Positions 17,933 through 64,000 of a stretch of 64,000 bases of DNA are shown piece after piece. Each line of letters opens with the position of its first letter. Within the stretch, counting starts at the first letter, position 1. The notes beneath the pieces are model-generated. The model saw nothing but the letters and a program-made list of their open reading frames with translations, searched no databases and was not told the origin of the DNA. Location of the stretch: assembly GCA_964234715.1 (NCBI GenBank), contig OZ174281.1; one strand, written 5' to 3'. The stretch comes from Podarcis melisellensis. Taxonomy: Eukaryota. The position numbers were made by a program, and so were the translations under genes.

Positions 17933-18189
17933 TTACTTCTTCTCCTTCTTCCCTGACTTCTTCTTGTTTCCACCTCCGGAGGCTGCAGGTTTCCCATCCC
18001 GCTTGGCTGCAGAGTTGGAGAGCGTGGCTGTGCTGCCAGGGATGTACACGTTCTGTCTGTAGTCAGGGACGTGCTGCAGGGTGAACTGGGGGCCATACCT
18101 GGTGCTGAGGCCCATTGTGCCGGCTGCTGTTGCTCCTCCGCCCAGAGTAGAATTTCCATCAGGATTTGCAGCGGCGGCGGCAGCGGCTT
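17933..18189 (-). CDS. PCDHG: PCDHG constant exon 3, coding part ([53 protein letters not shown]...[11 protein letters not shown])
   Basis: gtgtag|AAGCC acceptor at 18190/18189. Hallmark [22 protein letters not shown] and lysine-rich C-terminus. Stop TAA at 17935-17933. Confidence 0.97.
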
Positions 18190-21100
18190 CTACACCACCA
18201 CAGGGAGGGGGATGGAGAGAAGGAGATTGGAAGGGGGAGAAAAGTCAGAAGGGCGAATTCTTAGCATAGTCGTTGCTAGATGTCAATGTATAATTTTAGG
18301 GTCTTGACTACACATCATCTAGGGAAGATGCACTCAGCCCACCTCCCCACCCCCAGAATTCTTATGAACAGCAAGCTCTTTGGCATGTGCACAAGGCTTG
18401 GGAGTGATAAGGCAGAGAGCTCTGGTTTGAAGAAGTGGCATCCTGCAGCCCGGCAAAAATAAATCCCTGCTTTTTCCTGAAGCCCAGAGGATCCGAGTGG
18501 AGAGGAAGGGAAAACTCTAGGCAAGAACAAATAGAGGCTTGCTAGCACACTCAGAGCTCTTAGGAGCAATCTTACTGTGCCCTTGTCGCATGCCTGGGAT
18601 GCTTGGCAAAAAGGTGGGTGTTGAACCCTCATCCCAAAAAGGCTGTGTGCTTTTTGCAGGGAGCCTCATGGCCAGGGAGCCACATGGGTGCTGTGTTGTG
18701 TGTCTTCTGTGACCTCTCATTTGTATGCCTTGCATTGTAATCGGCTGTGTTACTGCAGCAGTGGTGCGTGTGTGCAGGCGTCTGGGTTAGGGGTGTGTCC
18801 CTGTCATTTTTGCACTATAGACTTAAGTTTTCCATTTTTTAACAGTTGGCTTTAATGAGAGATAAACACTCCTTTTACAGTAAACAATGACATATTTGTA
18901 TTTTACAAAATACAAATGCTTCTACTTATTTTAGATTCACTGAAGATGAGCCATCTGTGGCCTGAAACCCAGCTTTTGTTGATGATGAATACATTTGCCT
19001 GTATACCCTTCTATGGACTTCTTTGTGCCATGCTTATTTCTGGAGCTTCCTTTTCATTTGACTTCCCAAAATACGAAGAATCTATGAAAATACTGAATGT
19101 GTAGCAACAATAGAGCAAGGAGGAACAGGAAGAGGTATTAAAATTGTGCCAATGGACTTAACTATTTTGATTTTGGCTAGAGGAGAGACATTCTGTCCTG
19201 GAGTTAGCAGTTATGCATGGGTTTTTAATAAAAGGGTTTAAAATAGTGCTTTTTCTGGGGGGATGCAGGGGTACACATACCCCTAAACATGTTGTGTTTT
19301 TAAAACGGGAAAGGACAATCTGTCTTCTCCGCTGCCTTATCTCTTCCTAGTGACCTACCAACCCACTTCTGTGCTGTAGTTTGACTGAGGAACTCGAATG
19401 AGAAAAGACCGTCCAATTGAGCTGCCCTGGTAAAGCTTTTCTGCCCTCTGGCATGAGATGGGCTTTGATTATTATGCACAGCAGGCTCCTCAAATGAAAA
19501 ATAGCAGCCGGGTGCCAGAATAACATCCAAGTGCATGGAATGGCAGACTCTAGTTTTGTATGGTCTTTGGTTAATTTATTTATTAAGTCAAACGTCAGTT
19601 GCCCCACACAGAAGATTAAATTTATAAAGAAAGAGAGCACATATACTTTAACTGTTAAAAAATACTGAGTGATCAGTCTGTGTCAATCGCATGATTGAAC
19701 CCCTCTATGCCCTCTTGCTAAAGAACGTGAGAAGTGCTTTCCTGTATCAAGACCCCAGAGCCCAGCCTTGCTCTAGCTCTGAGGTGGGCAGAAAGTATGT
19801 CAAGATCTACTGGCAGACCTCTGGGTTATTTGCAGTAGATTGTCTGGGGAGGGTTCCTCACTCCCAATTGTTTAACAAGCAGCTGTTGTTTTCGCTCTCA
19901 ACGCAAGCACGCTGACACCAAACTCTACATACATTAAGCATAATAGAAACACCGCCACCCGACCCCACTCCCATCCATCTTCCCTCTCTCCACCCCCTTT
20001 CTTTTTTCTTTCTTTTTTCTTCTCCCCCTAATGCCTCAACAAATGAAACAGATCTGTAAAAACGCTACGTGGAAGAAGAAGAAAAAAAAAATACGAGGCA
20101 CTACACTTCTGTAAAACAAGAAAATCCTTAATAAAAAAAAAAAAATGGCTGCGAAGGGGAAGAATCTTTAGGCAGAATGCAGGACCCAGAGTAGATTTTT
20201 CTGTGACAGAACTGTGAGCTCAGTTCTGGTATGAAAAAATAATCATAATCCTGAGATGACCATGCTAAGAGAGGCTCTATTTCTTAATTATATGTAGCGT
20301 CTTTCCGTAAACCCCTTTTGCGCCTGGCTTCAGTTGGTGGATCTTGGGTATGGATGGAGTCTTGATTTTCAATATGCACAGGTCCCCCCCCCCCCACAAA
20401 AAACTTGTTTCCCTCCTTAATCTCAATGGGAAACCAGCTTCCCCCACAGTTCTGCTTAAAAATATTAGCAATTATTGTATCTTATATGCATATTATGCAC
20501 ATATACACTCCAGCTTTCTAATAAGCTGCATTTGGCCTCAACATTATGCTTCACAAGTGTTCCAAGAAAAATAAATGCCCCTAAAAATATGCAAACTTTT
20601 TCAGAAAGGTGCTGAGAATCAATCACCACAATAAACTTTAATGGGGCACCTTGAAAACTTAACTTTCTTTTGTTTTCTTGTTTGCAGAGCCTTAGCTTCT
20701 CATTCTGGCTTTTATGCTGACTGCTTTCTATACTCCTACAGTTGCAGATCTTTTTTCATACAACAGTTTGATTTGAAGGGAAAGCACCTGTGAGAGGCTA
20801 AAATCTTGAGAGGACCACAGGCAGGGTCCCAAGGGGAAAGGGGCTGCCTAATCCTTTACTCAAGCTGCCTCTCCTCCTCCTGTGGCTCCCTGTGGGGAGA
20901 AACAGCCTGAGAAGATGTGGAACAGGTGACTAGGGAAGCGATTTAGAGCAGATGAAAGGGTTAAGAAGTCCTCCTCCTCCCAGGTAGACTCTGATTTATT
21001 TCATGCTCACATTGACCTGAATTTTTGTGTCTCACCTCTTATGGCCAACAGGAGGCTAGGAAAGCAAATCTTAGAACAGGCAAAAATAAATGAGTTTGTG

Positions 21101-27625: not shown

Positions 27626-27714
27626 CATTTGCTGATGCAAGAATCATGGCTTGAAGCATTTCTGTATCAAACTGGTTGTTTGGCCAAGTCCCATTCTCAT
27701 CCCCATTCTGAGAC
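27626..27714 (-). CDS. PCDHG: PCDHG constant exon 2 (89 bp; [29 protein letters not shown])
   Basis: ccttag|GTCTCAGAATGGG...GCAAATG|gtcagt. 89 bp as in mammals, and phases fit exons 1 and 3. Confidence 0.97.
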
Positions 27715-36827: not shown

Positions 36828-37051
36828 CCTTAATCCATAGGTTGGTTCATTCACTGCATATGGAAAACAAGTGTGAGATAACATAGACTCAAACTCACAC
36901 AACCCTTTTCGATTTTTTTTAGCACGATGTATTATAGAAATTGTGGCAGAACAGCTGAAAGATCAGTGCATTTCCACAACAGCACAGAATGAAAATCCAT
37001 AGCTGGAACTTTGGAACAGCTTTCCAGAAGATGAGAAAATAAATAACTCAC

Positions 37052-37110
37052 CCACTGGTTCCTGGTCTCTGGGCCTGAGAGAAACGCCAGTCTGTGTTAG
37101 GTTGTGCTTG
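37052..37110 (-). CDS. PCDHG: PCDHG constant exon 1 (59 bp; [20 protein letters not shown])
   Basis: Not in the ORF track. Reverse complement reads ttgcag|CAAGCACAACCTAACACAGACTGGCGTTTCTCTCAGGCCCAGAGACCAGGAACCAGTGG|gtgagt. Same length as the human exon and near-identical peptide ([20 protein letters not shown]). Confidence 0.97.
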
Positions 37111-40100
37111 CTGCAAAAGAAACACAAAGAGAGGTTTAATGCTTCTATTCCTAAAATGAAGCTCAGCTATAAAATATACACACACATGCACACACAAGCA
37201 GAGAACATCATTATATGTTCCGAAATACTTCTAAAGAAGCGTGATTGGTTAACATGATAAGAAAATAATTTAAATAATTTTGCAGAAGATAAGACAGTCA
37301 GAAACTATCCATGAATAAATGAAGCATGAAATAAGCTTGAAGGGGCATCATTTAAACCAGAGAACACCAGAACATCAGGAATAATTTTTTTTTGGGGGGG
37401 GGGGAGAAGAGCAGAAATAATTGGTACTGAGAGAATACCAACATCTAAAATGCTAATAGAATTTCCTAATTTATAATCTTTTCTGAAACAGGTCAGTGTT
37501 AGGGCTTTGATTTAATGTCTTCTGTTTCCTTTGATCTTTGGAGCATTGCAATCTTTTTCGCCCACTGAGATTAAAAATTTCATTTCCCACAACAATAATG
37601 ATTTCTTTGAAGGCGCAACAGAAGACACTATATCAGAATAGATTGAGTCATGTATTACTTTCCACCCACATTGTTGTATTATTAGAACAATGGACATTTT
37701 GTAAATAAAGGAGTACATAAAATGCCACTATGAGCAGCATGTCTGAATGGCTCTTTGTGATCACAGCTGAAAGAAACACTGTGGTTGATGCATGCTGCAA
37801 AACTCCATATATCCTGTCAGTCTCCTCCATTAATCCTTCAGTAATAATATTCCACACCATTAGAGAGATTTGCACCCGAACCGTTGTTTATGTGTTTTTT
37901 CCTTAAACAAAATGGATAAACATGTTTTAAGATCAGGATACAAGGGTGTAATCGACATCTTATTCAAGCAACGTCAAAATTAGAATTGATTCAGGTCAAT
38001 CTGGACTCCAAGGATCCTGCAAATAAAAAACTATATGCCTGCAATCCAAACCCCACTTGCCTGAGAGTAAGCCCAATTAAATTCAATAGGACTCATTTCT
38101 GAGTAGACATAGCTAGGGTTGAGACAATGTGTCCTACTACAATAGGAGGATTCCAGCTTTACTGATTATTGATCTGTGAAAGCTAAAGGATTAAAATATA
38201 CTACTGGTGTCAGTTAAACAAGTTCATAAATCTATTTATGTATGTCTATGTGTAAAATTATCATATATAACAGTAGATAGCATGTATTATATTTCTCTGC
38301 AGACTAAATATGCAGAAACAACCTCTTCCTGTGAGTTATTCATTGTGAACACTTACTTCTTCAGTTGCTTCTATAATTTGCAGAGCCAGAGGCTACAATA
38401 ATCAAACCTTGAATCCTAAATTTAAACACCTAAATACAGGCAGTTCTTTAAATATATTTTGAGCATCTCCAGCACACACTGAATTAAAAAAAAACCTCAC
38501 ACACAACCTGTGGTTTTTCTGAAGTTTAGAAAATGGCACCTGTTTATTTAAGTTTCTAAATGTGGATTTAGACATTCCTAAAATGGTTAAGTTCCTGTCC
38601 CCAAGTCTCAAAAAGCTCAAATTTCAGCTATATTTCTTTACGAGGTGGCAAAAGCTAGCATGTGAAAGCTGTGTATGATAAGGATTGCAAAACAGAGTGT
38701 CATGTGTTGCAAAATACTGCATTCTTTCTGCACATAGTATCTTCATAGCGCCAGCAAAATTTAGAAGCAGGAAAGAAGCAAAAATGAAGTAAGAACAGTT
38801 TGTTAAAATTACTGATATGTAAATTTTGTGTTGTTGCTTTTTCTTAAATAAGCTGAGCCTGCCCCTTTCACTAAGGGCTCACTGCTTCTTGTCCCTTGTG
38901 TTAACCGAATGGGGATTTTTCATTTTTAAAAATACGTTATTTTTTTTTAAATTTATATTTTAAAATGTATTCTTGCCCACATTATAACACATCCAAGTAA
39001 TTCAGTTAAAAATATACTGCCTCACTTGCAGTCACTCTTAGCTCCTGCCACTCTTATGGAAAGGGCTTGATGATGCCTTCCTGTGCACTTCTGAAATGCC
39101 CATTCACTTCAATGGGACTTCCACATGAGAACGTCCCAGTGAATGGTCATAAGAAGTTTTCCCTAAGGTGCTGCTTAAGTGTAACTGTGATGTCACAGAA
39201 TCATGTATTTATAGGATGTACTTGTTTTAAACACTTGCAGGCTGCTCTTGGGGCGAAGACCCCCGATGCAACATGTCAAAATTAAAACATGCTCAAAATG
39301 GCAAAGTAACACTAGCAGCTTCACAGTTTTTCCACAATATTACCTTAAGATGGTGATAGATCTGGATTTGCCTGACAGTTTTACAGAACTCTGATAATGG
39401 TGGCAGTGAGGTGAGTAGGGAGTACTTTTTTAAATGAATTCAGCAACCCTCACCTTTTGACCCATATCCTCACCATCACAGTCTCTTTTGCTAAAGGATC
39501 CATTAAGCACATCTGTGCGAAACGATGCAGCTAAAGATGCCTCAACATATACACCCATGTGGTCCCATTTCAGCCTCTTCCTTTGAACCTCTGCTCAGAA
39601 CTAACTTCTTCCATAAAGCCTTTGGTTTAAACCTCTGGCTTTCCTCTCCAGCTGAGATGAGAGTGGAGTCAAAGTCTGTTCAGATCTGGCTTCTTCCCCA
39701 AATGTTTGCTGCACATGTAGAGAAGGTCTGGAACAGAGCTCGTTTGTAGCTGCATCTGCTCTCATTCATCCTTCGCTAAACTTGCCTCCCCCTTTTCTCT
39801 GACTACATTTAGGTCGAGAGCTTCTTGTGGCAGGGCCATGGGTTGTGCTTTTCTTTACTCTGTAAAGTGCTGTGCACACGGGTGGCATAATAATAATTCT
39901 ACTGAGTTTTTAAAAGCCTAACTGACAAGCAACTGTAGCAACCCAAACAGGACTGTGGATCCACCTGACCTTATGTCCAGCATAGGGCTACCTAAACGTC
40001 CCATCAGCAGATGGGTTTCCTCTTGCAAAACAGGACTCCCCTTGCCTCTTGCCTCTCCCCTGCCCCACTCGCTGTGCACCACCTAACTCTGTCTGGAGGT

Positions 40101-40614
40101 TCCTCAACCCTCTGGAGCAGATTTGGGGAGAGTTTGTGGAGCATGTGGAGAGGAAGAATGGGGGAAGGGAAGGAGGCAGATCCCATTTCACAAGCAGAAA
40201 TCCTTGCACGGATGGGATACATGTGTTGGATTATCACCCTATATATTTGTTTTATTATAATATTTTTATACCACCCTTTAATCATATTCCCAGGAGTCCT
40301 ACCACTGCACATGCATTCTCCTCTCACCCCAATTTACCATAGAACATCCTGGGGGTGGGGTGAGGCAGTTGGAGAGAGTGTAGCATGGAAAGAAATGAAA
40401 GCCCTACATGCACCTTGTAAAAAGCATAATAGCTGCAAAATGAAGGAACCCCGGGATGTCACCCTCCACAACACACACACGCACATGCATACACACCTCA
40501 TTTACCTCTTTACACCTAGCCGATGGAAGTCTATGGTAGATAAATATGGTAGATAAATATGGATTTATGGATTGCAAGCAGAAATGTTTTAAGAATCACT
40601 TTAGTGTATCTTAC

Positions 40615-43050
40615 CCCATCAGAGGGACTCTGCAAAACACTGCCTGCCTGCTCAAAGGCAAGCATGCTTTCTGCTGTAGTGGAATGACTGAAAGGTTTAA
40701 CAAAAAAGAATTCGCCCTGTTCAGACATTGGAGAGAGACAAGACTTGTAGTGCTGAGCTCCAGCTCCGCCCACTTCAAGGTATCTGATAAAGCCTTCGGG
40801 ATGTGGGCGCCCAGTGAAATTTATGGTGGATTTCCTGTCTGTCCTCTTACTACAGCAGTGTGACATGAACCAGCTGGGGACACAGAGGCCAGATCTGAAG
40901 CACCTGGCCCCCACAATAACCAACATTACACAAGAGACCAGAGAGATGGCCACAAGAGAGATGATAAGGTAGAGAGTTAGGCTGGGGGCTCTGGAAGGTG
41001 ATTTGGGGAGAAGGTCCAAGGACTTGGAAAAGTCCTGCACAGCATTATCCTCTGAGGAAATCACAAGAACCAGTGAGGCTGAGAGAGACGGCACTCCATT
41101 GTCTCTTACTTCTATCACCAACCTGTGGGACACCCCGGGCTCCCTCAATGCCCGAACAGCCCGGATCTCTCCTGAGTGGCGTTCCACTTTGAACGGGGTG
41201 GCTTCATTGGCATCCTGAAGCAAACTATAGGACAGCCAAGCATTGTGGCCACTGTCAGCATCCACAGCCACCACTTTGGTCACCAGGAATCCAGGTTCCA
41301 CCGGGAGCAGAACTGGCTGGTGAAAGGCAGAGCCCTTGGAGACTTGCGGGTGCACAATCACCGGGGCGTTGTCGTTCTGGTCCACAACAAACAAGTGAAG
41401 AGTGGCTGTGCTGCTCAGGGGTGGGAAACCCGAATCCTTCACCTCCACTGCAACTTGAAAGACTTTCTCTTGCTCATAGTCAAGCATCCTGGATGTGTAA
41501 ATGCTGCCATTCTCTTGGTTGATGTGGAAATAGGTCGAAATGGGTAAGCCATGATTTCCATTGTCCAGAATGGAATAAGACAGCTTGGAGTTGACACCTG
41601 CATCCGGATCTGAGGCTGACAGAGAAAAAACTAGAGTCCCAGGGGAAGTATTTTCCTCCACATGGGCAGTGTATGAAGGGATGGAGAAAGTGGGTGCATT
41701 GTCATTGACATCTGAGACTTGAATAAATATGTTTTTGTGGGTGGATTTTTGAGGCATCCCAGAATCTGTTGCTTTAATTGTGATATTATATCCAGCAGCC
41801 TTCTCTCGGTCCAGGGGCCCATTGGTCACCAGTGAATAATGTCCCTTAAAGGAAGACACCAGTTTGAACGGGATGTGCCTGGTAATCTCCAAGTGGACTT
41901 GCCCATTTTCCTCAGAGTCGTTGTCCTTTGCTTGGATCAGGGCAATGACTGTTCCTGTGGGTGCATCTTCTTGCACTGGGCTAGAGAGGGAGGTCAGCAT
42001 AATCTCTGGGCGGTTGTCATTGACATCAACAAGTTCCACTCTGATGTTGCAGTGACCCTCCATGGCAGGGGACCCCTTGTCTTTTATGTAGATAGCTATC
42101 TCGTAAGCATTGGCTTCTTCGTAGTCCAGCAGAGCTTTGGTCCTGATCTCCCCTGTCTGGGGATCCAAGCTAAATAAGTCAAGGAGCTTCAGAGGTGCGC
42201 TATTGCTGGCTTTGAGGAAATACTCCATCTCTCCATTGGGACCTTCATCTAAGTCCGTAACATTGAGCTTAGTTACGACAGTCCCCACCTGGACATTTTC
42301 CTCCAAATAAACTTTGGACACTGGCGGGTCACACACAGGAGGGTTGTCATTTGCATCCAGGACGTGGACTGTCACCTGGGCAGTCCCAGACTGAACAGGA
42401 TTCCCACTATCCAGAGCTGTCAGGACTAAGTGATGGACAGCGGCTTTTTCCCTGTCTAGAAGCTTCTCCAGCACAATTTCGGGCATTTTGACCCCGTCCC
42501 CCCTGACGTTAATGCTCAAGGCAAAATGTTCGCTTGGGCTAAGCTCATAGGAGGCAATGGAGTTGGAGCCCGTGTCCGGGTCTTCGGCGGCTTCCAGGCG
42601 CAAGCGGGTGCCCGGGTTGGCCACCTCGGTGATTTCCAAGGAAACCCTGTCCTTCGGGAACTTGGGGGCGTTGTCGTTCACGTCCAGGATCTCCACCTCC
42701 ACCCGGTGGAGCTGCAGGGGGTTCTCCAGCACCAGCTGGAGAGGGAAGGAGCACGTGGGGCTGGAGCTACACAGAGCTTCGCGGTCCAGCCTCTCGTGGA
42801 CCAGCAACATGCCGTCGGCGAGGTTGACATGGAAGTAGTGGCGCATCCCGTCGCTGACCAGCTGCAGGCGGCGAGCGGACAAGCTCCGCACGTCCACGCC
42901 TAGGTCCTTCGCCACGTTCCCCACGGAAGAGCCTGGGTCCCGGTCCTCCGGGATGGAGTAGCGAATCTGCGCGGGGATGAGCCCTGGCAGGGACAAGACG
43001 GCAGCCACCAGCGCCAGCAGCTGCCACGACCAGCTCTGCCCGCCGCCCAT
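40615..43050 (-). CDS. Extra C-type protocadherin gamma variable exon 2, last variable exon (812 codons)
   Basis: ATG at 43050 (MGGGQSWSWQLLALVAAVLSLPGLIPAQIRYSIPED), six cadherin repeats, TM, cytoplasmic YKSCLSPMSEQGEFFFVKP. Donor GGG|GTAAGA at 40615/40614, phase 0. Confidence 0.92.
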
Positions 43051-43560
43051 GCCTGGCTCCTTTGCGCGCAAGGATGGCCGTCTCCAGCGGCTGCCTCTGC
43101 TCCAGGTATCCAGCCCGGGGGTGGCCGCCGCTGCCTCCGGACCCCGCCGCAGTCCGGTGCCCCCCGCCCCCCAGGTCTGCTCCTGGCGGCTCCGGGGTGA
43201 CCTGAGAGGTGCTGTGCAGCGGAAAGGCGCGGGCTGCAGCTGGAGAGGCGGGAGGGGGGAGCGGGGGGATTTTAAAGCGCTCGGATCAGCAGCAGCTCAT
43301 TGGCAAAAGGAGCAGCAGAGAAAAGGGGCTGTGAAATGGATACAGACAAGCGGCAATTCCCTCCTCGGCGGCGGCGGCGGCAGCAGCAGCAGAGAAGCCC
43401 CTTCCCCGAAACGCACACACACCCTGCTGCTCCCCCCTCCCCAATCTCTCTTGCCACCAGTTTTCCCTCCCTGCGCTTCCCATTCCTTTCCCAGCGCAGC
43501 AGAGAGATTTGGAGGGCTGACCCAAGGGAGCCATTGGCCAGAAGAGCTCCCTTGATGCCC
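42490..43560 (-). promoter_or_regulatory. CpG island and promoter of the last variable exon
   Basis: CpG-rich 5' exon and upstream region. Minus-strand CCAAT boxes (GCCAATGAGC ~43295-43304; second ~43533) and TATA-like TTTAAAA ~43270. Confidence 0.65.
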
Positions 43561-43914
43561 CTTTGGTGGAAAAGCAGGAATCGAAGGTGCAGAACGCAGA
43601 CAGGGCGAGCTGCTGACGGCAGCTGTAACTCCAGGAGGGGGGAGGGGGCTACTCTACCCTCCTGCAACCTCTTCACTTCAATCCCCTCCCCCCTCCCCTC
43701 CCCTCCCCCCCCCCTCATAAAGAAAGAGAGGAAAATTAGGCACACAAAGCTTTGGAGCAGATAGGTGCAATGTATCACAGCCTATGCTTGAGACCACGCA
43801 TTGATTCCTCACCCCCACCCCAGGCACTTCTCCCAGGTGCAGGGAAACTCAAAGGAAAAGAAAGGTGGTGCCATGGCTGGAACAAAATAGGGACACTACA
43901 TGGAAAATTCTCAC

Positions 43915-46353
43915 CTTGCCAAAGAAGCTGGGTTCAGTGAGATTGCTGCAAGAGGCTGTCCTAAGTGTCAGATTAGGTTTCATGAATACAAATTCGCTAA
44001 TGTCTGAGACAGGAGAAAAGCAGGATCTGTATCCACGGGCAGGGGGTCCAGAAGTGGCCACTTGCACTCCTATCATGGCATCTCCAGGGCTCAGCTGATA
44101 ATGGCAGTGTCCCATCACGTGATCTGAAGCATCTTGAAGCCCACCAGCTTTGCTTCCACAGCATCCAAAGATGGTAGATGTTGCACGTGAATCACGGCGG
44201 AGGCATCGAACTCCCAAGGCCACCAAAGCCATCAGCGAGATGGTGGAAATTGCTGCCAAGGAGATGATAAGGTACACAGTCAATGTGGGAGGTCCCTCAG
44301 TTTCCACTGAGTGAGCTGTTAACCCCAGAAAGGCTTCAGGGCTGCTCTCCTCCAAGAGCACCATCACAGTGACTGAGGTGGACAAGGAAGGATCACCTGA
44401 GTCTTTGACAACCAGGACAAGGTCCTGCGTAGGATTGTCTATGTCCTGTAATGCTCGTGTAGTCCTCACCTCCCCGCTACGGAGGGCCATGCTGAAAATA
44501 CCCGGGTCTGTGGCTTGCTCTACATGGTAAGAGAGCCAAGCATTTCGCCCAGAGTCCAAGTCCACTGCCATAATTTTTGTGATTAAGGCATTGGCTGCAG
44601 TAGATCGTGGAATTCTGAACTGTACAACAGAATCTTTCCCAGTAAAGGGGAATCGAATCCAGGGTGCATTGTCATTCTGATCTAGGAGGTAGATGTGCAC
44701 CATGATTCTGCTGCAGAGAGGAGGGGAGCCACCATCACACGCCTCCACCAGGAACTGAAAATGATTCGTATGCTCGTAATCAAAAGGGCTCTCTGCAAAG
44801 ACATCTCCATTTGTTGGGTTGATGGAGACATAAGAGGTGAGGTCCTCAATCAATCCTTGCCCTGGGCTCGCCAAAACAGAATAAGACAAACGGGAGTTCT
44901 GGTCCTTATCAGAATCTGTTGCAGAAACTCTAAGCAGTACCACTCCCACTGGATTGTTCTCTTCTATGACGGCTTCATAAAATGGCCTGTCAAAATGAGG
45001 TGGGTTGTCATTGACATCTGCCAGAGTTATGGAGAAAGAGGTGTGCTCAGAAAGAGGTGGATTCCCCAAGTCAAAGGCATAGATGGTGACGTTGTATTGC
45101 GGAGTGCTCTCACGATCTAGCTGCTCACTGGTGAGCAAGGAATACTGGTGCTCAAAGTCTTTCCGAAGTTTGAAAGGAAGGTTTCTGGGCAGATCACACC
45201 GGACTTTCCCTTGATCCCCAGAGTCTCTATCCTTGACATGTATCACAGCAACCACAGTGCCAGGAGGCGCATCTTCACCCATAGAGCTGGAGAAAGAGGT
45301 GAGAATAACTTCAGGTGCATTGTCGTTGACATCTGTGACTTCTACCATAACACTGCAGTGTTCCTCCATAGTAGGGGAGCCCATGTCCTTAGCCTCCACT
45401 TCGATCTCATAGACATTAGCCTCTTCAAAATCCAGGTTCCCTTGGACACGGATCTCTCCCGTAGTCTCATTGATAGCAAATATCCTGCGCAAGGCTTCTG
45501 AGTTATGGCTGCTGAGGGAATACCTCACCTCTCCGTTAGGCCCTTCGTCCAAGTCTGTTGCGTTCAGCTTAATCACCAGAGTTCCTGGAGGAGAGTTTTC
45601 TACTAAGCGGGTATAATAAGTAGGTTTGTCAAAAACCGGATGATTATCATTGGCATCCAGAATGTGGACAGCAATTCGAATAGCGCTAGATTTGGGTGAT
45701 ATGCCCCCATCTTCAGCTGTCAGGACCAAGTGGTGGACAGCGATGTGCTCCCTGTCCAGGGGTTTCTCCAGTACTAGCTCTGGGAATTTGGTGCCATCCG
45801 TACGTGCCTTCACGTTGAGGTTGAAGTTCTCATTGGCGCTGAGGTGGTAGGTCTGTAAAGTGTTAGTTCCTACATCTGAATCCTGTGCGTGTGGGATGGG
45901 GAAACGGGCACCCAGTGCAGCCAGTTCATAGATCTGCAGAGATATTGTGCTACTTGAAAACACAGGCGCATTGTCGTTGATATCCAGAATCTCCACTTCG
46001 ATGCGATAGAACTCCACTGGGTTTTCAATCGCAAGTTTGAGATGCAAGAAACAGCGCAGGTTCTGCCCACAGAGCTGCTCCCTGTCTATTCTGTCATTGA
46101 CTATTATGATTCCAGTGTTCACATTCACAGAGAAATACTGGGAGTCAGAATCAGAAAGCACCTGCAGATTGGCAGCTGCAAGCTTTGTCACATCCATTCC
46201 TAAGTCCTTAGCAACATTTCCTACAAAGGCTCCTCGAGTGAGTTCCTCTGGGACAGAGTAACGGATCTGTGCAAAACAGTCACTCAGAAACAGACAGAAG
46301 GCAAAGGCATGCACGAGTCCCAAACGCCAGGCAGAGTTTTCTGTTCTGAGCAT
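43915..46353 (-). CDS. Extra C-type protocadherin gamma variable exon 1, downstream of C5 (813 codons)
   Basis: ATG at 46353 (MLRTENSAWRLGLVHAFAFCLFLSDCFAQIRYSVPEE), six intact cadherin repeats, TM, cytoplasmic YRSCFSPVSDISEFVFMKP. Donor AAG|GTGAGA at 43915/43914, phase 0. Confidence 0.92.
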
Positions 46354-46584
46354 CTTTCTGAAATCCACAGCAGGAAGCTCTAAAACTGCAAAACAGGAGC
46401 TAAATATAGCAGGCAGTATCTCTTTAAACCTCTGGAGGATTCACCACCTATCTCGAAGAAATATGAAATATATGAGAGGAAAAGGGTCTGTGGTCAGTGT
46501 TTACCTCTCTCATTCATTGTTTTGGTTTGAGAGAGATTGACACAGGAGGGGAGTGGTACACACCGCAGATCTTCAATGCTAACC

Positions 46585-49924: not shown

Positions 49925-51452
49925 TTCAGAAAAAAGTCCCCTTCCAGAAGGAGTCTTTGTGATATCCCAGGGATAAGGAGGCTCCAGGACCTGGACGAAT
50001 GCTGTTTTTTAAATCCCTCGGTATTTCCTTCCAAATGAGTTAAAGTAGCTTTTGAGCTTGCCTAGCTGCAGCAACAGAATGTTAGTCAGAGAGTTGAGGG
50101 GGTGGATTGGGGGAGGGAAGCTGAATTACAGCCATAGCGACGGAGGAGGAAAGTCGAGGCAGAAAGAGCTGATCCCCCCTCCCCCCAAAATCTGGATCAG
50201 CACCTGACTAGATGACAGCTCCATCCACTCTCCACCAGTGGCAAGTCCACCTACACTCTTAAAGCTGCTGCAGCACATGAAGTTGGGAGACCAGGAGTGA
50301 TCACCCCCATACCTCAACCCTAAATGTAACCAAGAGGCTGGTTTGCCACTGGTTTTGGCAGCTAAGTTTAGCAGCTCAGATTCTTGTTCTCAAGGAAACA
50401 GCACGTCCGGGAAGCATGAACGGTACAAATCCTCATTGTTCACATTAGCTAGATTCATTCCATCTCATCTGAACAAAAGACAAACTCTCAGCTGTAGGGG
50501 ATACAGAATCATAGTCTCTCTGGCGAACAACTGGTCTGATTTTTCACTTGCAGTGAAAAAGGTATTTGTTACAGTCGAAAAGAGGAAAGATAGGGAGAAA
50601 CTCTCACAGAAAGTGCTTTAGCATTTTGCAACGCAGCTTCAATAAATGCATTTAAAACTCTTAGTCATTACCAAGGCAAAACAGACCCTTTCAGAATGTT
50701 CATTTTCAAATGCAGACATGGGAACCTCCACCACACAGTGAAGAATGCACAATCTTCAAAATTGCTTAAGGCCTCCCAGCTCTATTCATTGGCCTTTCCA
50801 AAATTAGAACACCACAATCAATGCAGCAGTATTTCTAAGTAGAACCATTGTAACCCAAAGACCATGGTGTGGCTTTGAATGTCAGAGACCCACATACCAA
50901 GTAGTTTTTAAGCTGTGGTGTTAAGGCACTTTCCAATAATGCGACACCCAAGTACAGATTCACAGAACTGTGATGGACTCAGTGAGTGGACCATTTTTCT
51001 TAAGATGGGGTGCCTCATTCTTGATGCACTCCCGACTTATGATCCTTAGCACTTTTTCTTTCCCCCTTTTCCACCAAGCTTTCAAAAACACCAGAAAAAC
51101 AAATATTTGACAACCTCCGCTGGAAAATCATTTAACTGCTGGATTTATTTTTCGGTTAGAAACTTTTTGCTGCTTGTTAACCTAAATCTAAGTACCAGTA
51201 GTTTAAAAGCATTACTTCTTGCCAAATATCCACAGGGTGAACAACTGCTAATCTTCCCAAGCTTCTTCTAAAATAGCCTATCTCCTTGAAGAATCTCAAA
51301 TCCAACAAAATGCTTTTTAATTTACAAACTGACCACCTTAACACAAAGGCTGCCTGACATTGCCATTGCATCTGTGACCTTATCTCTGGAGATTGTTACA
51401 GAATCACAGGGTGCTACATGACATAGTTATAGAACAGTATTTCATGCCTCAC

Positions 51453-53903
51453 CTCGTTTGGCTCTTGGGAAAGGCTGTAGGCCAGAAGTGTGCCTGTGCT
51501 GTTGATATCCTGCTGAGTGACTGGTGTAGCTATCCTGAAATTCCTCCCTTCTGAAAAGTGGGTCTGGCCAGGCCTTAGGAGGGTAAAAGGAGAAACAACA
51601 TCTCCCCCAATGAAGGCTGTAGGGAATTCCATTTTTTCCTCCTGGCTCAAGCGTACTGAGAACGTGTCAAAGTGTCCTCCCACAGGAATAGAGTTCCTAC
51701 CCTTCAGGTCGCTGGTCCAACCCACATCTGAGTGTCTTCCTTTCAATCTTTTAAGACACTTCATAGCTAAAAACACAAAGGCTAGAGCAGAAAGTCCTGA
51801 GATTGTGATTAGAGCAATAATGAGTTGCAAGGTCAGGTGAGATAACCCTTCTTGTTCCATGCTGGACTCTCTGAGGTCTGCTGTGCCCAACTCATGCTCA
51901 TGCTCTAGATTAAGAATCAGAGTGGCTGTGGCAGACAGAGGTGGCTTCCCATTGTCCAAGATCTCAACAACCAACTCTTGGGAAGGGGCGTCTTGTTCCA
52001 GGAGGGCTCGGACGGTTCGGATCTCTCCTGTGAACGCCGAGACTTGGAAAAGGCTTGGGTCTGTGGCTTGCTGCAACTTATAAGAAACCCATGCATTCTG
52101 CCCAGAGTCTGCATCCACAGCTGTGACTTTGGTTACCAGGTAACCTCCTTGTGCAGAAAAAGGGACTGGCTGCTGGGCTAGGACCCCCTTCTTGGTTACA
52201 GGGTATACAACGAGAGGAGCATTATCATTCTGGTCTATGATGAAGATGGAGACAGTCACGTTGGCACAGAGTGGAGGAGAACCATTATCCTTAGCTTGAA
52301 TCTGGAAAACCAGTTGCTGGGTTTGCTCATAGTCAAATGAGCAGCCACTGTAGACAGTACCGTTCTCCATAACATAGACATAGGAGGAAATGGGCATTCC
52401 ATTTATGATATGCTCCACTAACGAATAAGACAGGTGTGAGTTCTGCCCCAGATCAGGGTCAAAGGCAGATATAGAAATGATTGGCAGCCCCAGAGCATTG
52501 TTCTCAGTTACGAGGGTCTCATATGCAGGCTGTGAGAAGTGGGGTGGGTTATCGTTCAGGTCAGATATATTTACAAGGAAGTTTCTTTGACTGGAGAGAG
52601 GTGGAGAACCAGAATCCGTAGCTGTGATCATAACTTTGTACTGTGAGATTTCCTCCCGATCTAGGGGGCCACTGGTGATCAAAGAGTAGTGGTTCTTAAA
52701 GGAAGGTACAATCTGGAAGGGGACATCTGCAGGGAGATGAAGCTGTACTTCTCCATTTTCCCCAGAATCTGCATCGCTGACTCTGAGGAGCCCTGCTGTG
52801 GTACCTGGGGGAGCATCTTCTGGTATGGTGGTGGTGAGGGAAGTGAACCTAATGATAGGCTCATTGTCATTCACATCCACTACCTCCACTAAGATGTTGC
52901 AGTGTGCATCCATGGAAGGTGACCCTCGGTCTTTGGCCCTCACATCAATTTCATACAATGTGTCATCTTCATAATCCACACTTCCCAGGACTCTTATCTC
53001 CCCAGTCTCCTCATTAAGGCTGAACATTTTCCGGATTTTCTGTGGAGTGTGGCTGCTGAAGGAGTAGGAAACTTTCCCATTTGCCCCCTCATCATTGTCT
53101 GTAGCTTGTAAATGTATCACAAGGGCCCCCACTGGGGCATTTTCTAGTAGGCTAACTTTGTACACCGACTGGTTAAAGACAGGTGGATTGTCATTGGCAT
53201 CTACGACTGACACGAGGATCTTTGCTGTCCCGGATTTGGCAGGAACTCCTCCATCCAGGGCTGTAATCACCAGGGGGTAGCGCTGCTGCTGTTCTCTATC
53301 CAGCGCCTTCTCTAACACCAGCTCAGGTTTGCTGCCGCCTTTATGTGACTTAACACTGAGGCTGAATTGTCCACGTGGACTCAGCTGGTAGGTGCTGACT
53401 GAATTCATGCCAATGTCCAAATCTTCAGCACTTTCCAGGGGGAAGCGGGCCCCCGGCATTGCAGACTCTGCTATCTCCAAATGGGTGAGACTGGTAAGAA
53501 AAACTGGGTCGTTGTCATTCACATCCAAGAGCTCAACTTCCACACGATGGGAGGCTGTTGGGTTTGCAAGTAGGAGCTCCAGATAGAGCAGGCAGTGTAA
53601 GCTGGGCCCACAAAGCTGCTCTCGGTCCAGCCGTTCTTTCACGACCAAGACACCATTTGGCACCTTGGCTTCGAAGTACTTTTCAGCAGAGCCAGCCATG
53701 ATCTGCAGCTGTCGGGAGACCACCCGGGCAGCATCTAGACCCAAGTCTTTAGCCACATCCCCAACAAAGGCCCCAGGAGCTAACTCCTCAGGAATTGAAT
53801 AACGGAGCTGGGTCATCTCTCCAGCACACTGGAGAGAGACAGAAACCAAAAGCAAAGCTCTTACTTGCCATGGCAGGAGTAGTCTTTCTTCCAGAGACAG
53901 CAT
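51453..53903 (-). CDS. C-type protocadherin gamma variable exon, gamma-C4-related (817 codons)
   Basis: ATG at 53903 gives a signal peptide (MLSLEERLLLPWQVRALLLVSVSLQCAG), then six cadherin repeats and a TM. Donor GAG|GTGAGG at 51453/51452, phase 0. The C-terminal half has C4-like marks (NAWVSY, FDYEQTQ, DLRESS) but EC1 is unlike human C4, so orthology is uncertain and no symbol is given. Confidence 0.9.
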
Positions 53904-54599
53904 AATGTCGCCAAAATTTCCTCTTCCTTTGCTGGACTTCTGTCCTCTCTGATTCCAGCACAGCCAAGGAAACAACACAGAATCCCGGGTTAGATCGCGC
54001 AAGGGATGAGAAAGCGGCGCACCATCTGCATCTTTTCTCTGTTTTTCTTCCACAGAAAACAGCGGCGGTGCCTAGTCCGTATCGGAATCAAGAGGGGAGG
54101 AGCTTTGTTGTCCATCAAAGCAGATACAGGGCTCCTGGAATCAAGGACGCGCCTGGCTGTTTGCAATGGACCACCCATTCTCCCCCTCCCCAGCTCCAGC
54201 AATGGTGTGGGGGAGGTCTTAAAGCGCCAGTGCAAATGTTGAAGAAGAGCTGGGAGCCCATTCGCCAGCTGTCAGTGACTGGATTTCCCAAGATAATTAT
54301 ATGAACAATAAATCCTATGTCATTACAAGCTTTTGAATTCATTAATGAATGTCACAAGCATTTAAATTCAATAATGAACACTCTTTGTTTGGAATGGTTG
54401 GGGTTATAAGCTAAACCAGCAAACTGCAGATTTTGCAGATTTTTTAAAAAACAGAATGCAACAAACACCAGTGGCTGCACAATTAAGTGATATACTGCCA
54501 TTTGCTGGATATAAGATCACGTTAAAAGACCCATTGATTGTCTGCCTGAATTTCCTTTAAATGAATGGCATTCAATAACCGATGCAGGAGAGCTCTTCA

Positions 54600-56230
54600 A
54601 AGCTCATTCCCACTATGGCCTTTGTTCTCCAAATGGAGTATACTAAGAGTCTCTCCATATTTCCTTTCCTAAATTTCAGGAGTTTTGCAGCCAGTGCACA
54701 AAACAGAATAAACCATGACATCACAAAGGAATTTTTTAAGCCTCTGGAGTCAAAGGTTAGGAGGAGCAAGGTTAAAAAGAGTTTTATGAGCAAGAACCTG
54801 GTCCCTGAGGTTCCCAACAAACAGCTTCCATAGTGGAGACAACATAATAGTTAGGGAAGGGGTCAGGTCAATGAGATTCATGGACTTCCTGGAAAAGATG
54901 AAAGAAATCTATGAATAGAAGTACTTTCTCTCCCCTAAAGGTAGACAATGCCTTCTGAATGTTGTCATGGTGGACTTCAGTGAAGAGGTAGATGAGGCAC
55001 ACTGCTGTTGAAAAAGTGGTGTCCTCTGTCTTATGTGCATTAGAAGCACCTGGATTTGCTCCTAGTGGCATCATGTGTGGATGAGAAGCTGGGCACCTCC
55101 CGTGTGTGAGATTTCACAGTAGAAATGAAACAGACAGAATGTATTTACGGTGATGGTTCTTCTCCAGGAGTACTGTGCAGATAATATAGGGCAATGATCA
55201 CAGGTTGTTCGTATTGCATTTGTTATTCTGTTAGCTAGATTGGTCTTCACTGTCCAGAGGAGTATTTGTGACTAAAACCTGGTTTTGAAACACGGCCCAT
55301 GGCTTTAAACGCAGGCATCTGAGAATACTGGCAATCACTGCTGCTCCACTGCCTCTGGAGTGAGCTGCTTGCTATGTGCAGAGACATGCTCTCTGGCATG
55401 GACAAAGTTTGTTTTGACCAAGGTACAATCTTTTGGGTATTTGGGGACATAAAAAATGTGCACCACCATATATTCCATGGCAAAGACGTCCACCTCATTT
55501 TAACATTAAACTTATAGCTTCTATTTTATAGGCAAGCCTCCTTTTCACCACAGCTGTGACTTCCCAATAGTCACATAATGCTGCATTGGGTGGAGTCCCC
55601 CTATATACGGAATTGCCATACTAAGTAAGGTGTTGCTCCAATATAGAGCCTTCAGGACCAAGCAATGCTCAACTGCCTTAATTCCCGGTCAATGTTTTTC
55701 AAAGAAGCAAGTTCAGATCTCTTCACATCAACAGACAAGAAAGTCTTAACAAGTAAGTGATGACGGAACTGCTGCTTGTTCTACTAACCAAGGAATGTTA
55801 ATTTCTCTGATTCTAAATATCTCTCTGTGTCACAGGCCCTGGAGAGGGTAGGAATCATCAACACCTGCATTTCCCACTTCTGCCTGATACATTTCCATGG
55901 ATCTTTTTACATCCATCTTGACTCCATGAAGGAGCTTGACTCACATGTACACAGGGACTCACAGTTTACAGGTTCCTTTCAAAGCAGTAAAAATCTATTT
56001 CCACAGTTATCATCTCACTAATCAACTATTATATAGCAGTTGTTTGGGGATGCAATTTCCCGTTCTTTGCTATGATTTCTATGTAACCTAAACTCACCCT
56101 TCTAGTCCACTTGGACTAGTGATGGTCAGGGATTGGCACAGTGCCTGGGCAGAGAGCACAGAACAATTAGCAGCATCCACAAAACTCTTGCAGGGTGGAA
56201 GCACCTTGAGATTCTGGACTCAGGCTACAT
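54600..56230 (-). pseudogene. Decayed protocadherin gamma-C4-like variable exon (relic C)
   Basis: Collinear fragments with stops and frameshifts: RVLWMLLIVLCSL (signal-like); KEPVNCESLC (55949-55978); MEMYQAEV (55875-55898); VDVKRSEL...IDRE...HCLVLKAL; AVFQNQVLVTNTPLDSEDQSS* (55231-55296); TVKSHTREV; DLTPSLTIML; FCALAAKLL. Boundaries approximate. Confidence 0.75.
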
Positions 56231-56799
56231 CAAGAACAATTTTCTTCAGCTCAAGAGTTTGTATTTGTATATTACAACACCAAAAAATCACAATATCAAA
56301 TACATTCCTTGACTTACTGATTCTGCCTTTTCTAATGCCTGAGGATACACATTAAAAAAACTTAAGGATACTATTCTTTATAATGAATGTTCTTATCTTG
56401 ATAATACCAATGTCTTTATACACTCTTGCTTATCTTGAATTCACCTGCACATAACTTTCAACTTTGCAATCCTATTTATTTTCAGAATCCATTTAGTCAC
56501 AAATAGCACACATACTGTACAAATATTTCTAACTAGTTATACACAGTCTTGGTTCACAGAGCTACGAACGCTGCATACCAAGCTAAGTGGCTTTGAAAGA
56601 TGCAAAGCCACTTGGCTTGGTTTAACTAACACATGTGAACTTAACACACATAACTACATGACACTGTGCTAAACTTCACAGGAAACAGTATTTGATGAGA
56701 AGCAATTCAAATCAGTTCCTAATGCACACTTGTGCCATTTAACTTTAATGAAATCACAATAAATATTTGGTGCACAGGAAAACATTTCAACAATGGAAA

Positions 56800-58750
56800 T
56801 GGGAGACCTTGTAATTAGGATTTGAGAGGAGTGGGGAGACTGATATCTCACTTCAAAATCTGAAATGTGATTGAGTTAGATTGCTTTAGACTTTTTGGAC
56901 AGTCAATGACTATTTTCTAGGTTCAAGATTGTAGACAAGCAAGCAAGAGGGAAATTTTAAATGTTAGGGGTCAACATACAGTAAGTTTCATTACATTCAC
57001 TCATCCCCCTACACTAAACTCATTTGTGAAAGGCACCATAAGATCTTGAGTGGGGTCTCTGGGCAGGGATTGTGTATGTTTATTGCTGTCAAATCTCATC
57101 CAGTGGCAGATGGCTAGACAGCGTGGTGTTAGCCAGCTCTTTCCACTCTTTGTCTTCCATTATCTTTACAGAAAAATAAATATGGTTACTTTCTTGCATT
57201 GCTCTAGATTAGATGATAAAGTTTCTGATCTTGGATTCTCCTGTGTTGCTTTGGCTGCATATATGCTCATCTTAATTTTCAAAGTGAGATTTCTTCTTTC
57301 TAATCTCAGCGTCCTATAATTTAGGGATACTTCTTACAAACTAGAAGACCAGTGTGTTTGGCAATAAACCCCACAGCATATGAAGCTGTCGCTTGCATTT
57401 ATTTCAGTGCACAAAGCGCAGCAGGTTCTGGCCCCTTGCAACATATTTTCAAGCACATATGATTTTAATAAGTACAGCCTCCTCAACTGAAAATGTAATG
57501 GACACACTAAATGTTCACATTGTTTCAGTAATACGTGAAGGAGCCCTGATTATATTTGGTGAGAGTCTGCCCTGGTTTTGCATATTTTAGAGCCAGATGG
57601 CCTACTAATGAAAAGCCTCTAACTTTTGTTAAAACACTAAAGAAACTAATGGTTCTGCCTGTACAGATTAAGTGTGGGATCTGGTGCAGCTTTAAGAGTA
57701 CATCAGCTTAGGATCATCATATTGTGCTGGAATTGCTGATGCCTATTGACAGGACACACACGGACACACAAACACACCTCTCTTCCGCTGTCTCTGTTGC
57801 CCGCCCTGTTTTTCTGATCATAGTCATTTTCTTAACAATCTCCCAGACTATGTAATTTTGGGTAGGAAAACGTAGCTAAAACAATTTCCAAGGATCTCAG
57901 GGTTCACATGTCAACCATTTCAAGCAAAGCAACATGTATGGCAGTTAAGAAAGCCTAATTATGAATTGATAACAGCAATGCAACCCTTTTGGCATCAGAA
58001 TAGTAATAATAAACAATAATAATTTAAATCTCAACAACAAATTAAAAGTACAGATGAAATCACTAATCAGTTATCAATGAATTAACATCATCATCATCAT
58101 TATTACATTTATAAGGCTGCCTTCTAGCAGTTTTCTGGGTGGCTCACAAACCAAACCAAGCAGAATATAGCATATTAAAAACCTATGATGAATTAATTAA
58201 AAGTTGCACAATTTAAATCTCAAGGTATAAAATAAAAGCAAGCTACATACAAAATATCAATTACTGTTATGAATGTGTACATATATTTCCCACACAGCTG
58301 AAAGGTTAGATACCACATTGCTCTAAAACATGTTCGGATATCAGATGCCAAATACTAAATGCCAAATTAACCAGGTACAAAGTCTCAAAACCAGTTCACT
58401 GAAATGATGGCTCCGAAAGCTATTCACAAACTATCAGGGGTGAAACTGGCCTGGAGCCAGACTCTTTCTGGCAACCTCTGCTTCACCCTTGCAATCTCTG
58501 GGCTTCCTGGTCCTTCTTCCAGCGCCCTCTCCACATAAAGCTGCAGTTTATCGCTGTACCCTAAAACAACTTCCTGCCTATAGCATCTAATTGTGTAGCA
58601 GAATGCACCCTGAGCATGTATCTACACTGCAGATTCAAACTGGTGCAGCAATCATTCCCAAGGAATTTTATAGGAATTATAGGAATTGTGCTTCTGGCTC
58701 AGTTCTCAATGAGGTTGTACACCTGAGTCTGGGCTGTACCACTTCAGACT
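56800..58750 (-). pseudogene. Highly decayed protocadherin variable-exon relic B
   Basis: Collinear minus-strand fragments: AALCG; EAEV..SLAPGQ; PD/VNSFRSHHFSELVL (58386-58427); WHLVF; YVLENMLQGA (57430-57459); SLNYRTL; TLSSN..VTIFIF; TQSLPR. Manual alignment only. Confidence 0.5.
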
Positions 58751-61350: not shown

Positions 61351-61777
61351 CCAAGCCAAAAGGCCTCCCAACACATATCCAACCCATTATTTACAAAGCA
61401 TTACTGTTTCCTTGCGTATGATTTTTCGTAAAACATAAACTTACTGAGAGCTATCATTCTTCAGAGGCAATGACTATGCAACCCAACAACAGCTGACCAC
61501 ATTGATCTGACCCAGACCAGAAAGAACAAACCACCCAACGCCATGTAATGTAGGAAGGAACCAACCCATGCACAAGAGTTAAACAGGCGGGGCTCTTAAT
61601 CATGCTATTAAATAACACAGCACTAGATGGAGACAGAAAACAGGAAAAAGAATGTGTTCTACAGGAACTACCCTGTTTCCGGGTAGAAAGACATTGAGTG
61701 GTCTGCCTTTAAGTCAACTTAAGCTCAGAGCTGGGATTTCCCAACTTTGCTGGAGAAGGACAACAAGCATACATTAC

Positions 61778-64000
61778 CTCAGAGGACACCAGAAGCCTCT
61801 TATTTGTGCTTATTAGCTGGTTATATATTGCAGGGTCACATCTTGTGATAGTGCTCTGGCGGCTCCCCATAGGGCTGGGAGCAAAGGGCATTTTGTACAG
61901 AAGTTCACTCTGGCGAGAGTCCGTGGTGAGGACCTGCTGGTAGAAGTTTGGAGGAGTAAATCCACTCCGCACAGTGTCTATGTGGTTGAAAGGCCCCGGG
62001 GTTCTATAAAGGGAGCTTCTGGAGGCTTTGAATATATCCTTGGATTGCCTCCACTTGTAAAATTTATAAATCCCCACCCCAACCACGGTGACAAAGAAGG
62101 CCACTGAGATCAAGATGACAGCAATGATTAAATAGAAAGTCAAGTGCTTCTTTGTTTGGGGTGTAGTGGAGACAGCAGTCAAGTCTGTCAGTGTCTCCCT
62201 AGATGTCTCTGCTACATCTACAGCAAGGGTCACTGTGGAGGACAAGGCAGGCTCCCCATTGTCTTTTATTAAGATGAGCAATGTTTGCTTGCGAGAATCT
62301 TCTTCTTGCAGAGAACGAGCTGTACTTATCTCCCCAGAATGCAGCCCCACAGTGAACAGCCCTGGGTCAGTGACCTGAAGGAAGGAATACGAGAGCCAGG
62401 CATTGTAACCAGAATCTGCATCCCAGGCCACAATTTTTGTGACCATGTAACCAGGGCTGACTGTGGGTGAGATGACTTCTGAGAGCGAAGAACTGTTGTT
62501 TGAGTTTGGGTATAAGAGCCTGGGTGCATTGTCATTCTGATCCGTGACAAAAACATTGACAGTGATGTTAGTGGCGAGAGGCGGGAGGCCGGCATCACGA
62601 ACCTGGACCACTAGCCTGAACTCCATGGTGCCCTCATGGTCCAAGGGGACTAGGACATATATACTGCCATTTTCCCGATTAATAGAAAAATACCTGCCCG
62701 CCAAGTCTCCCGAGGACATGGGACTATCCAGGATGGAGTAGGAAAGGTGGGAATTCCGGTTCAGATCTGGGTCAGAGGCACTGATGTTAAAGATCAGGGT
62801 CCCTGGAAGGTTGTTTTCCTCCACGTACACATCATAGGAGGATTGTGGAAATTTAGGAGGGTTGTCATTTACATCAGACACTTTAACCAGTATTTGCTTT
62901 TCTGCCATGAGTGAAGGTGTGCCTGCATCCTGAGCTGTGATGGTGATGTTGTACTCAGAGACAAGTTCCCTGTCCAAGGGTCCTTTGGTCTGTAAGGTAT
63001 AATAATTTTTAAGGGAAGAGCTGAGGGCAAAAGGGATCCCAGAAGGTATAAAGCAATTTACTAAGCCATTATCACCAGAGTCCTGATCCGTGACACTCAG
63101 CAACGCAATCACAGTCCCTGGAGCCGCGTCTTCTGGTATTGGGCTGTACACCGACGTCACTGTTATTTCTGGGGTGTTGTCGTTCACATCCACAATCTCT
63201 ACCAGCACTTTGCAATGAGCGACACCAGGATTCGAACCCTTATCTTTTGCCTGGATATAAATCTCATAAAATTTGGCTTCTTCAAAATCCAGCAACCCCT
63301 TCAGCCTCAGTTCTCCAGTGGCAGAGTCTAGGGCAAAGAGCTGTCGGATTCTGGCAGGGGTGTGACTGCTGAAAGAGTACACAATCTCCCCATTGGGGCC
63401 TTCGTCCAGGTCGAAGGCTCTGGTTTGGACAACCAGGGTGTTCAAGGGTGTGTCTTCTTTCACGCTGGCTCTGTAGATGGACTGGTTGAAGACAGGGGCG
63501 TTGTCATTTGCATCCAGGACGTCAACCAGCACCTGCAAGCTGGCCGATCGGGGTGGGGTCCCTCCATCCATCGCCGTGAGAACCAGCTGCACTTCCCGCT
63601 GCTGCTCCCGGTCCAGCTCTTTCTCCAGCACCAGCTCCGCATACTTCGTCCCGTCGCCTCGCGTCTGCACGTCCAGCACGAAGTGCGGGTTGGCGCTGAG
63701 CTGGTAGGTCTGCAGAGAGTTGCTTCCCACGTCGGGGTCCTGCGCGCTCTCCAAGGGGAAACGCGCCCCGGGGGTCACCGACTCGCTGATCTCCAGCTTC
63801 ATCTGCTTGCTCTGGAAAGCCGGGTCGTTGTCGTTGACGTCCTGGATCTCCACGGTCACGCCGTACAGCACCAGCGGGCTCTCGGCCACCACCTCCAGGC
63901 TGAGCGCGCACGGCGAGAGGGCCCCGCAAAGTTCCTCGCGGTCGATGCGCTCGCTCACCAGCAACTTCCCGCTGCCCAGGTCCACCTCGAAGTACTTTCG
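61778..64000 (-). CDS. PCDHGC3: Protocadherin gamma-C3 variable exon (5' end lies beyond the window; EC1 part to EC6, TM, variable cytoplasmic domain)
   Basis: Open frame with cadherin DRE/DxNDN motifs. C3-specific stretches match human C3 from memory: EIYIQAKDKG.NP..AHCKVLVE, TSVYSP.PEDA, SSLKNY, KWRQSKD...SSLYRTPGP, LTTDSR, CDP. Donor GAG|GTAATG at 61778/61777, phase 0. Confidence 0.93.

Follow-up and report, generated by a model that had tools for sequence, protein, structure and literature searches.

A decayed protocadherin gamma-C4 exon in the lizard Podarcis melisellensis and the probable repeated loss of C4 among reptiles and birds

The window, by which we mean the whole 64-kb stretch of Podarcis melisellensis DNA analysed here, is the 3′ end of the Podarcis protocadherin-gamma (Pcdh-gamma) cluster, carried on the minus strand. 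Five long cadherin reading frames lie on this strand, with a decayed exon in one of the intervals. The gamma-C3 frame (61712-64000) has its 5′ end outside the window and is followed by the decayed gamma-C4 variable exon (54745-56035, minus strand), which corresponds to residues ~61-811 of intact C4. Beyond it lie four intact C-type exons: one of the anole 'gamma-c4' or coelacanth type (51453-53903, in a frame of 51417-53903 whose protein shares 98% identity with one from Podarcis raffonei), gamma-C5 (47411-49924), and two in the positions of anole gamma-c6 (43852-46368) and gamma-c7 (40534-43071). Three gamma constant exons follow on the same strand (37051-37113, 27627-27713, and 17936-18190). 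In the anole passages of Jiang 2009 (PMC2764143), the gamma cluster holds C-type exons c3-c7, the same five that are intact in the window. The non-coding DNA between the C4 splice donor and the next exon (54072-54740, minus strand) is kept in geckos, Elgaria, Tiliqua, and turtles, and this conservation makes it a synteny anchor for the relic. Its part at 54072-54450 is strongly conserved in lizards and turtles, lies 5′ of the 51453-53903 exon and is probably the promoter of that exon; coverage by a presumptive RNA run stops near 54264. Elsewhere in the window, 10306-11461 is GC-rich, with long overlapping frames on the two strands; the frame tested matched no Pfam family, and the stretch may be a CpG island or mark where an adjacent gene begins.

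The original prediction of a dead C4 exon cited four C4-like motifs, and all four lie where it placed them, in order, on the matching residues of the intact C4 of the marsupial Dromiciops. These are KEPVNCESLC (55978-55949; residues 86-95), MEMYQAEV (55898-55875; residues 113-120), VDVKRS (~55732-55715; residues 179-184), and AVFQNQVLVTNTPLDSEDQSS (55296-55234; residues 398-418), all on the minus strand. With five window paralogues and 120 homologues as queries, tblastn gave no significant match on the relic, and intact C4 as the query reached only E 0.4-3.6. Frameshift-aware protein alignment of marsupial C4 with the relic scored 65, as compared with 42±3 for shuffled sequence (maximum 49, n=60). 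A C4 DNA profile, built from Dromiciops C4 and three turtle relics, aligned collinearly along residues 83-561 over 55987-54957 with a score of 947 vs 232±25 in shuffles, and the predicted collinear similarity to C4 is thus significant. Single pieces of the relic also stand out on their own, with 441 vs 165±21 for 55565-55232 and 361 vs 165±23 for 55168-54961 (0/200 shuffles as high in each case). One contig of DNA run X13, which may be the assembly's own source, crosses the relic with 8 substitutions and 0 indels, and assembly error is ruled out by large deletions that recur in two other lizards. Contigs of one run contain a 4-base and a 17-base insertion in the relic, at 54843 and 55581 (single low-depth contigs), which fits indels varying without constraint between individuals or closely related species. 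The presumptive RNA run (tissue not given) covers the relic patchily and at low depth, with zero splice joints.

Measured against the marsupial frame, 54745-56035 carries ~28 frameshifting indels and 12 in-frame stops, counts that depend on the alignment, so that the stops, frameshifts, and deletions first noticed on the minus strand are indeed there. The best-preserved piece (55625-55987) spans the end of EC1 and most of EC2 (residues 83-~219) and contains three of the motifs. It is followed on the same strand by the end of EC3 with most of EC4 (55232-55565; residues 299-420), by an EC5 remnant (54961-55168; residues ~492-560), by the start of EC6 (residues ~576-593), the EC6 deletion and a probable TM remnant (residues ~683-718) within 54805-54955, and by the end of the variable cytoplasmic domain (54745-54800; residues ~781-811), with a decayed splice-donor position near 54740. 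EC2, EC4, and EC5 are largely present, while most of EC6 (residues ~594-682) and much of EC3 (residues ~229-300) are deleted; it was EC5 that had been thought largely gone, whereas EC5 is mostly present and EC6 is the largely deleted domain. The EC6 deletion is common to the relic, Elgaria, and Tiliqua, and a further deletion in the cytoplasmic domain (residues ~718-780), which leaves the last ~55 exon bases, is found in this lizard only. Fragments had also been said to run from the signal peptide to the TM. At the TM end this probably holds, with a remnant at ~54890-54805 that is placed through the Elgaria and Tiliqua alignment only and is not significant alone (EC6 and TM searched alone in the relic gave no significant match), while the signal peptide is undetectable: no alignment above chance was obtained for the signal peptide, the EC1 start or the promoter in 56036-56800. 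Two further assignments were discarded. The segment 54850-54810 was read as cytoplasmic domain and was reassigned to the TM after Elgaria and Tiliqua were added, and the hydrophobic-looking 54720-54600 maps 3′ of the turtle splice donor, that is, to the intron. In essence, the relic lacks the full exon architecture of signal peptide, six EC domains, TM, cytoplasmic domain, and donor in one frame; its lesions leave it without a role as a coding exon, and it makes no protein. In other squamates, some of the best-preserved relic sequence is that of the cytoplasmic domain (L006:9357-9422, L002:8848-9035, L009:8834-9035, and L010:8642-8871; interrupted by stops in Elgaria and Tiliqua), possibly owing to its closeness to the promoter of the next exon, and its scores against C4 are 509 in Elgaria and 831 in Tiliqua, vs ~250, with a clear match also in geckos.

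Which isoform decayed is best seen at the DNA level. The relic scores 645 against the C4 profile (z about 21) and 242-336 against five paralogue profiles, and in nhmmer searches only C4 matches it (E 1e-4 to 6e-6). At the protein level, turtle C5 and marsupial C4 tie on the lizard relic (65 each), and its identity therefore rests on DNA, on synteny, and on better-preserved relatives. Projected identity of the lizard relic is nevertheless highest to C4, at 27%, vs at most 23.7% for the others. The turtle relic is unmistakably C4: in Emydura it is 59% identical to C4 along the full exon, and a turtle relic piece scored 61 bits against a solved gamma-C4 chain and 31 against C5. A search of representative proteins with the turtle relic piece returned no intact C4, and Dromiciops is the sole intact C4 used as DNA. 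In a tree that included one intact C4 and in which the relics were projected on the C4 frame, a treatment that favours C4 grouping, the relics group with marsupial C4 as expected (100/100); support for C4 with C5 is only 84/66, and C5 is accordingly not claimed as the sister of C4. The position is also as first described, with the relic 3′ of C3 and 5′ of C5 on the cluster strand and with flanks that align with those of turtles and squamates. The stretch is almost certainly a unitary pseudogene: mammalian Pcdhgc4 has here an orthologue that is decaying in place, in the interval from C3 to the next C-type exon. That the C4 orthologue was lost long ago, as had been proposed, agrees with the exclusive match to the C4 profile, the tree grouping, and a neutral ratio of ~1 within crown squamates.

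The relic sits in the same post-C3 slot as mammalian Pcdhgc4/PCDHGC4 (Garrett 2019, PMC6957209; PMC8553613; PMC12559083), is collinear with it from late EC1 to the cytoplasmic domain, and has C4-specific motifs in common with it. By order along the cluster, coelacanth Lm-gamma-21 also falls in the C4 slot. In contrast to the relic, the mammalian exon is intact and essential; the relic has no reading frame and no detectable promoter or signal peptide. Like the protocadherin variable-exon pseudogenes already described (14 in anole), it is a dead variable exon within a tandem array. However, those pseudogenes are largely young, half of them with a single indel, while the relic is ancient, belongs to the normally stable C type, and is the orthologue of an essential mammalian gene.

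We compared the same region from 11 other species: three turtles, the gharial, Elgaria, Tiliqua, two geckos, kiwi, goose, and Dromiciops. C4 is intact in Dromiciops and in 0/11 sauropsids, the window included. The loss originally proposed for this lineage thus stands, but its scope is wider, extending to all sampled reptiles and birds and apparently having occurred more than once. As anticipated for other squamates, Elgaria and Tiliqua carry a decayed C4 with the same EC6 deletion (63% identity between window 54909-56032 and Elgaria, E 2e-102), while in the two geckos C4 is reduced to the end of the cytoplasmic domain. Among turtles, the exon has 11 frameshifts and 2 stops in Emydura, 15 and 3 in Lepidochelys, and 23 and 6 in Pangshura; the gharial exon, partial and counted with an assembly gap unfilled, shows 13 frameshifts and 8 stops. 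C4 is faint in kiwi and was not detected in goose. In Emydura, L008:3442-4124 is an open frame that starts in mid-EC6, takes in the TM and the entire cytoplasmic domain, and reaches a donor that looks intact; the 5′ part of the exon is frameshifted, and the two cryptodire turtles have no such open 3′ frame. The lizard, turtle, and bird loci that were retrieved contain orthologues of C5, C6, and C7. The Dromiciops region, in contrast, shows no trace of C6, C7 or the 51453-53903 type, and in the leopard three C-type genes close the gene list. The orthologue of the 51453-53903 exon is intact only in lizards among these loci, broken in the three turtles and the gharial, present as a trace in kiwi and missing in birds.

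Gamma-C4 is the one gamma-protocadherin that mice need for neuron survival (Garrett 2019, PMC6957209). Its cytoplasmic domain is necessary and sufficient for the survival of cultured mouse retinal neurons, and how this ~100-residue domain signals is unknown (PMC12559083). The two sampled birds, kiwi and goose, have no intact C4, though according to Lin 2010, as cited in the review PMC7339444, gamma-Pcdh knock-down leads to apoptosis of chick spinal neurons. The leading explanation, tentatively held, is that C4 became dispensable through the reciprocal loss of partly redundant isoforms. Here, the amniote ancestor would have possessed six gamma exons of the C type, with some functional overlap between their cytoplasmic domains. 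With C5, C6, and C7 retained, reptiles and birds could do without C4; in mammals, C6, C7, and the 51453-53903 type would have disappeared, and the neuron-survival signal would have come to depend on C4 alone. C7 is the best candidate back-up among the C-type isoforms. The marsupial C4 domain matches the C7 profile at E 4e-4 and that of C5 at E 6e-3, with weak or no matches to the C3, C6, and neighbour-exon profiles (E 0.12-0.4), and the domain of the Emydura relic matches C7 at 6e-7 and C5 at 1e-9. C5, likewise a candidate, is weakened as a back-up by the finding that mouse C5 does not rescue C4 knock-outs (PMC6957209). It is doubtful, though conceivable, that three independent losses (squamates, turtles, archosaurs) came about because C7, a paralogue lost by mammals, delivers the survival signal of the C4 cytoplasmic domain, perhaps together with C5.

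The survival role of C4 could instead be a mammalian innovation, a reading that is plausible if on the less probable side. C4 in reptiles and birds would then have been an ordinary dispensable paralogue that needed no substitute, with neuronal survival in these animals resting on generic gamma-protocadherins (through the constant domain or dose) or on another pathway. The repeated loss of C4 in reptiles fits this reading, as does the ready turnover of C-type exons, which is seen in the neighbour exon being broken in turtles and the gharial and missing in birds, and which is proposed in the C-type passages of Jiang 2009 (PMC2764143). No one-to-one frog orthologue of C4 has been reported (PMC4978886), and the marsupial cytoplasmic domain has diverged from that of the turtle relic, with much lower scores against C5 and C7. 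However, the C4 cytoplasmic core is common to C5 and C7, and on the branch to crown turtles the constraint on C4 equalled that on C5. This constraint was gauged from branch lengths at codon positions 1+2 vs 3 on a fixed tree, a rough dN/dS proxy with one intact outgroup. From the lepidosaur split to crown turtles, the lengths are 0.035/0.24 for C4 and 0.031/0.217 for functional C5; C4 was therefore still under selection on that branch and, for a long period, was not freely dispensable.

By the same measure, C4 appears to have been lost at least twice, once on the squamate stem and once near the base of crown turtles. Crown-squamate C4 branches have ratios of 0.84-1.23, vs 0.18-0.24 for C5, and cryptodire C4 branches have ratios near 1, vs ~0.2-0.4 for C5, while the archelosaur stem ratio of C4 is 0.05 (bootstrap 0-0.17). 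Lengths at position 3 also reflect GC drift and misalignment (squamate stem 0.6 vs 0.3 for C5). C4 died on the squamate stem, before geckos, skinks, anguimorphs, and lacertids split. A separate loss near the base of crown turtles is likely, given these ratios and single-base deletions at residues 142 and 295 that occur in all three turtles and not in the gharial, residue 142 being undeleted in squamates too. The ratio on the turtle stem after the archosaur split, 0.41-0.7, has a wide interval and is poorly determined, which leaves a third loss, in archosaurs, uncertain and only slightly favoured. A possible one-base deletion near residue 404 in the gharial and squamates was not accepted as a lesion common to both, as turtles do not have it and the alignment there is ambiguous. 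One loss would be the most parsimonious count for 0/11 sauropsids with intact C4, yet a single event behind the absence across sauropsids appears improbable: between the marsupial and the ancestor of crown turtles, the position 1+2 distance is 0.213 for C4 and 0.217 for C5, so near to each other that no long period of neutral evolution can be accommodated, and no convincing lesion is common to turtles and squamates.

That the 51453-53903 exon is itself C4, or took over from it, is very unlikely, even though this exon adjoins the relic, bears the NCBI name 'gamma-C4-like', finds its best match among EC1-4 structures in gamma-C4, and is covered by the presumptive RNA run. In the tree it groups with turtle and coelacanth proteins and not with C4, and the anole passages of Jiang 2009 (PMC2764143) likewise leave anole c4 without a human orthologue. 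In turtles, a relic of each exon is found, the two lying next to each other, which places both in the reptile ancestor, and the cytoplasmic domain of the 51453-53903 exon is unlike that of C4 (E 0.4). On this comparative evidence, its standing as the C4 orthologue is already refuted, and being broken or missing in turtles, the gharial, and birds, it cannot be a general substitute. Its broken or trace orthologues lie at L001:6364-8882, L005:8451-10749, L008:6869-8235, L004:15960-17409, and L003:6075-6320. In the leopard gecko (L006:10319-12872), the orthologue is in two frames separated by one frameshift and is a young pseudogene or an assembly error. Database names are unreliable for this exon and for 61712-64000: the former is named C4-like or C5-like in different lizards, and a C3 orthologue from a tegu (P0126) goes by the label 'subfamily C, 4'. 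A working C4 would need the constant exons in cis, which counts against the weakest alternative, that the relic is a defunct duplicate whose working counterpart lies elsewhere in the cluster or genome. That alternative, which draws on the reading of this genome having covered 64 kb only, is hardly credible, as squamates, turtles, and the gharial all have the relic at the orthologous position, and the complete anole cluster, in the passages of Jiang 2009 devoted to it (PMC2764143), has no C4 orthologue.

Taken together, the account of a pseudogene, repeated loss, and redundancy is reasonably probable as a whole. Parts of it were foreshadowed in the anole passages of Jiang 2009 (PMC2764143), where anole c4, c6, and c7 are without human orthologues, one human C-type gene, printed 'Hs gamma c2' and probably meaning c4, is without an anole orthologue, and differential loss is held to have shaped the C-type group. 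These passages contain no C4 relic, no loss in turtles, crocodilians or birds, no timing, and no link to survival, a role of C4 that was discovered in 2019, after Jiang 2009. Our literature search, with most subscription journals outside its range, returned no report of the relic, of repeated loss, or of C4 loss in birds, turtles or crocodilians. Pseudogene decay itself is ordinary, and the interest lies in which gene decayed and in the direct test that this suggests. Practically, 'gamma-C4' in reptile annotations can mean a different gene, and the chick gamma-Pcdh survival experiments were probably performed in an animal without C4. Reptiles and birds living without C4 limit its essential role to mammals, a role that is either mammal-specific or covered elsewhere by a sister isoform, and they provide a short list of natural substitutes that can be tested in the existing rescue assay. 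If the redundancy account is true, the essentiality of mammalian C4 would be a result of reciprocal gene loss, and the motif responsible for survival would be marked by those residues that C4, C7, and C5 have in common in their cytoplasmic domains.
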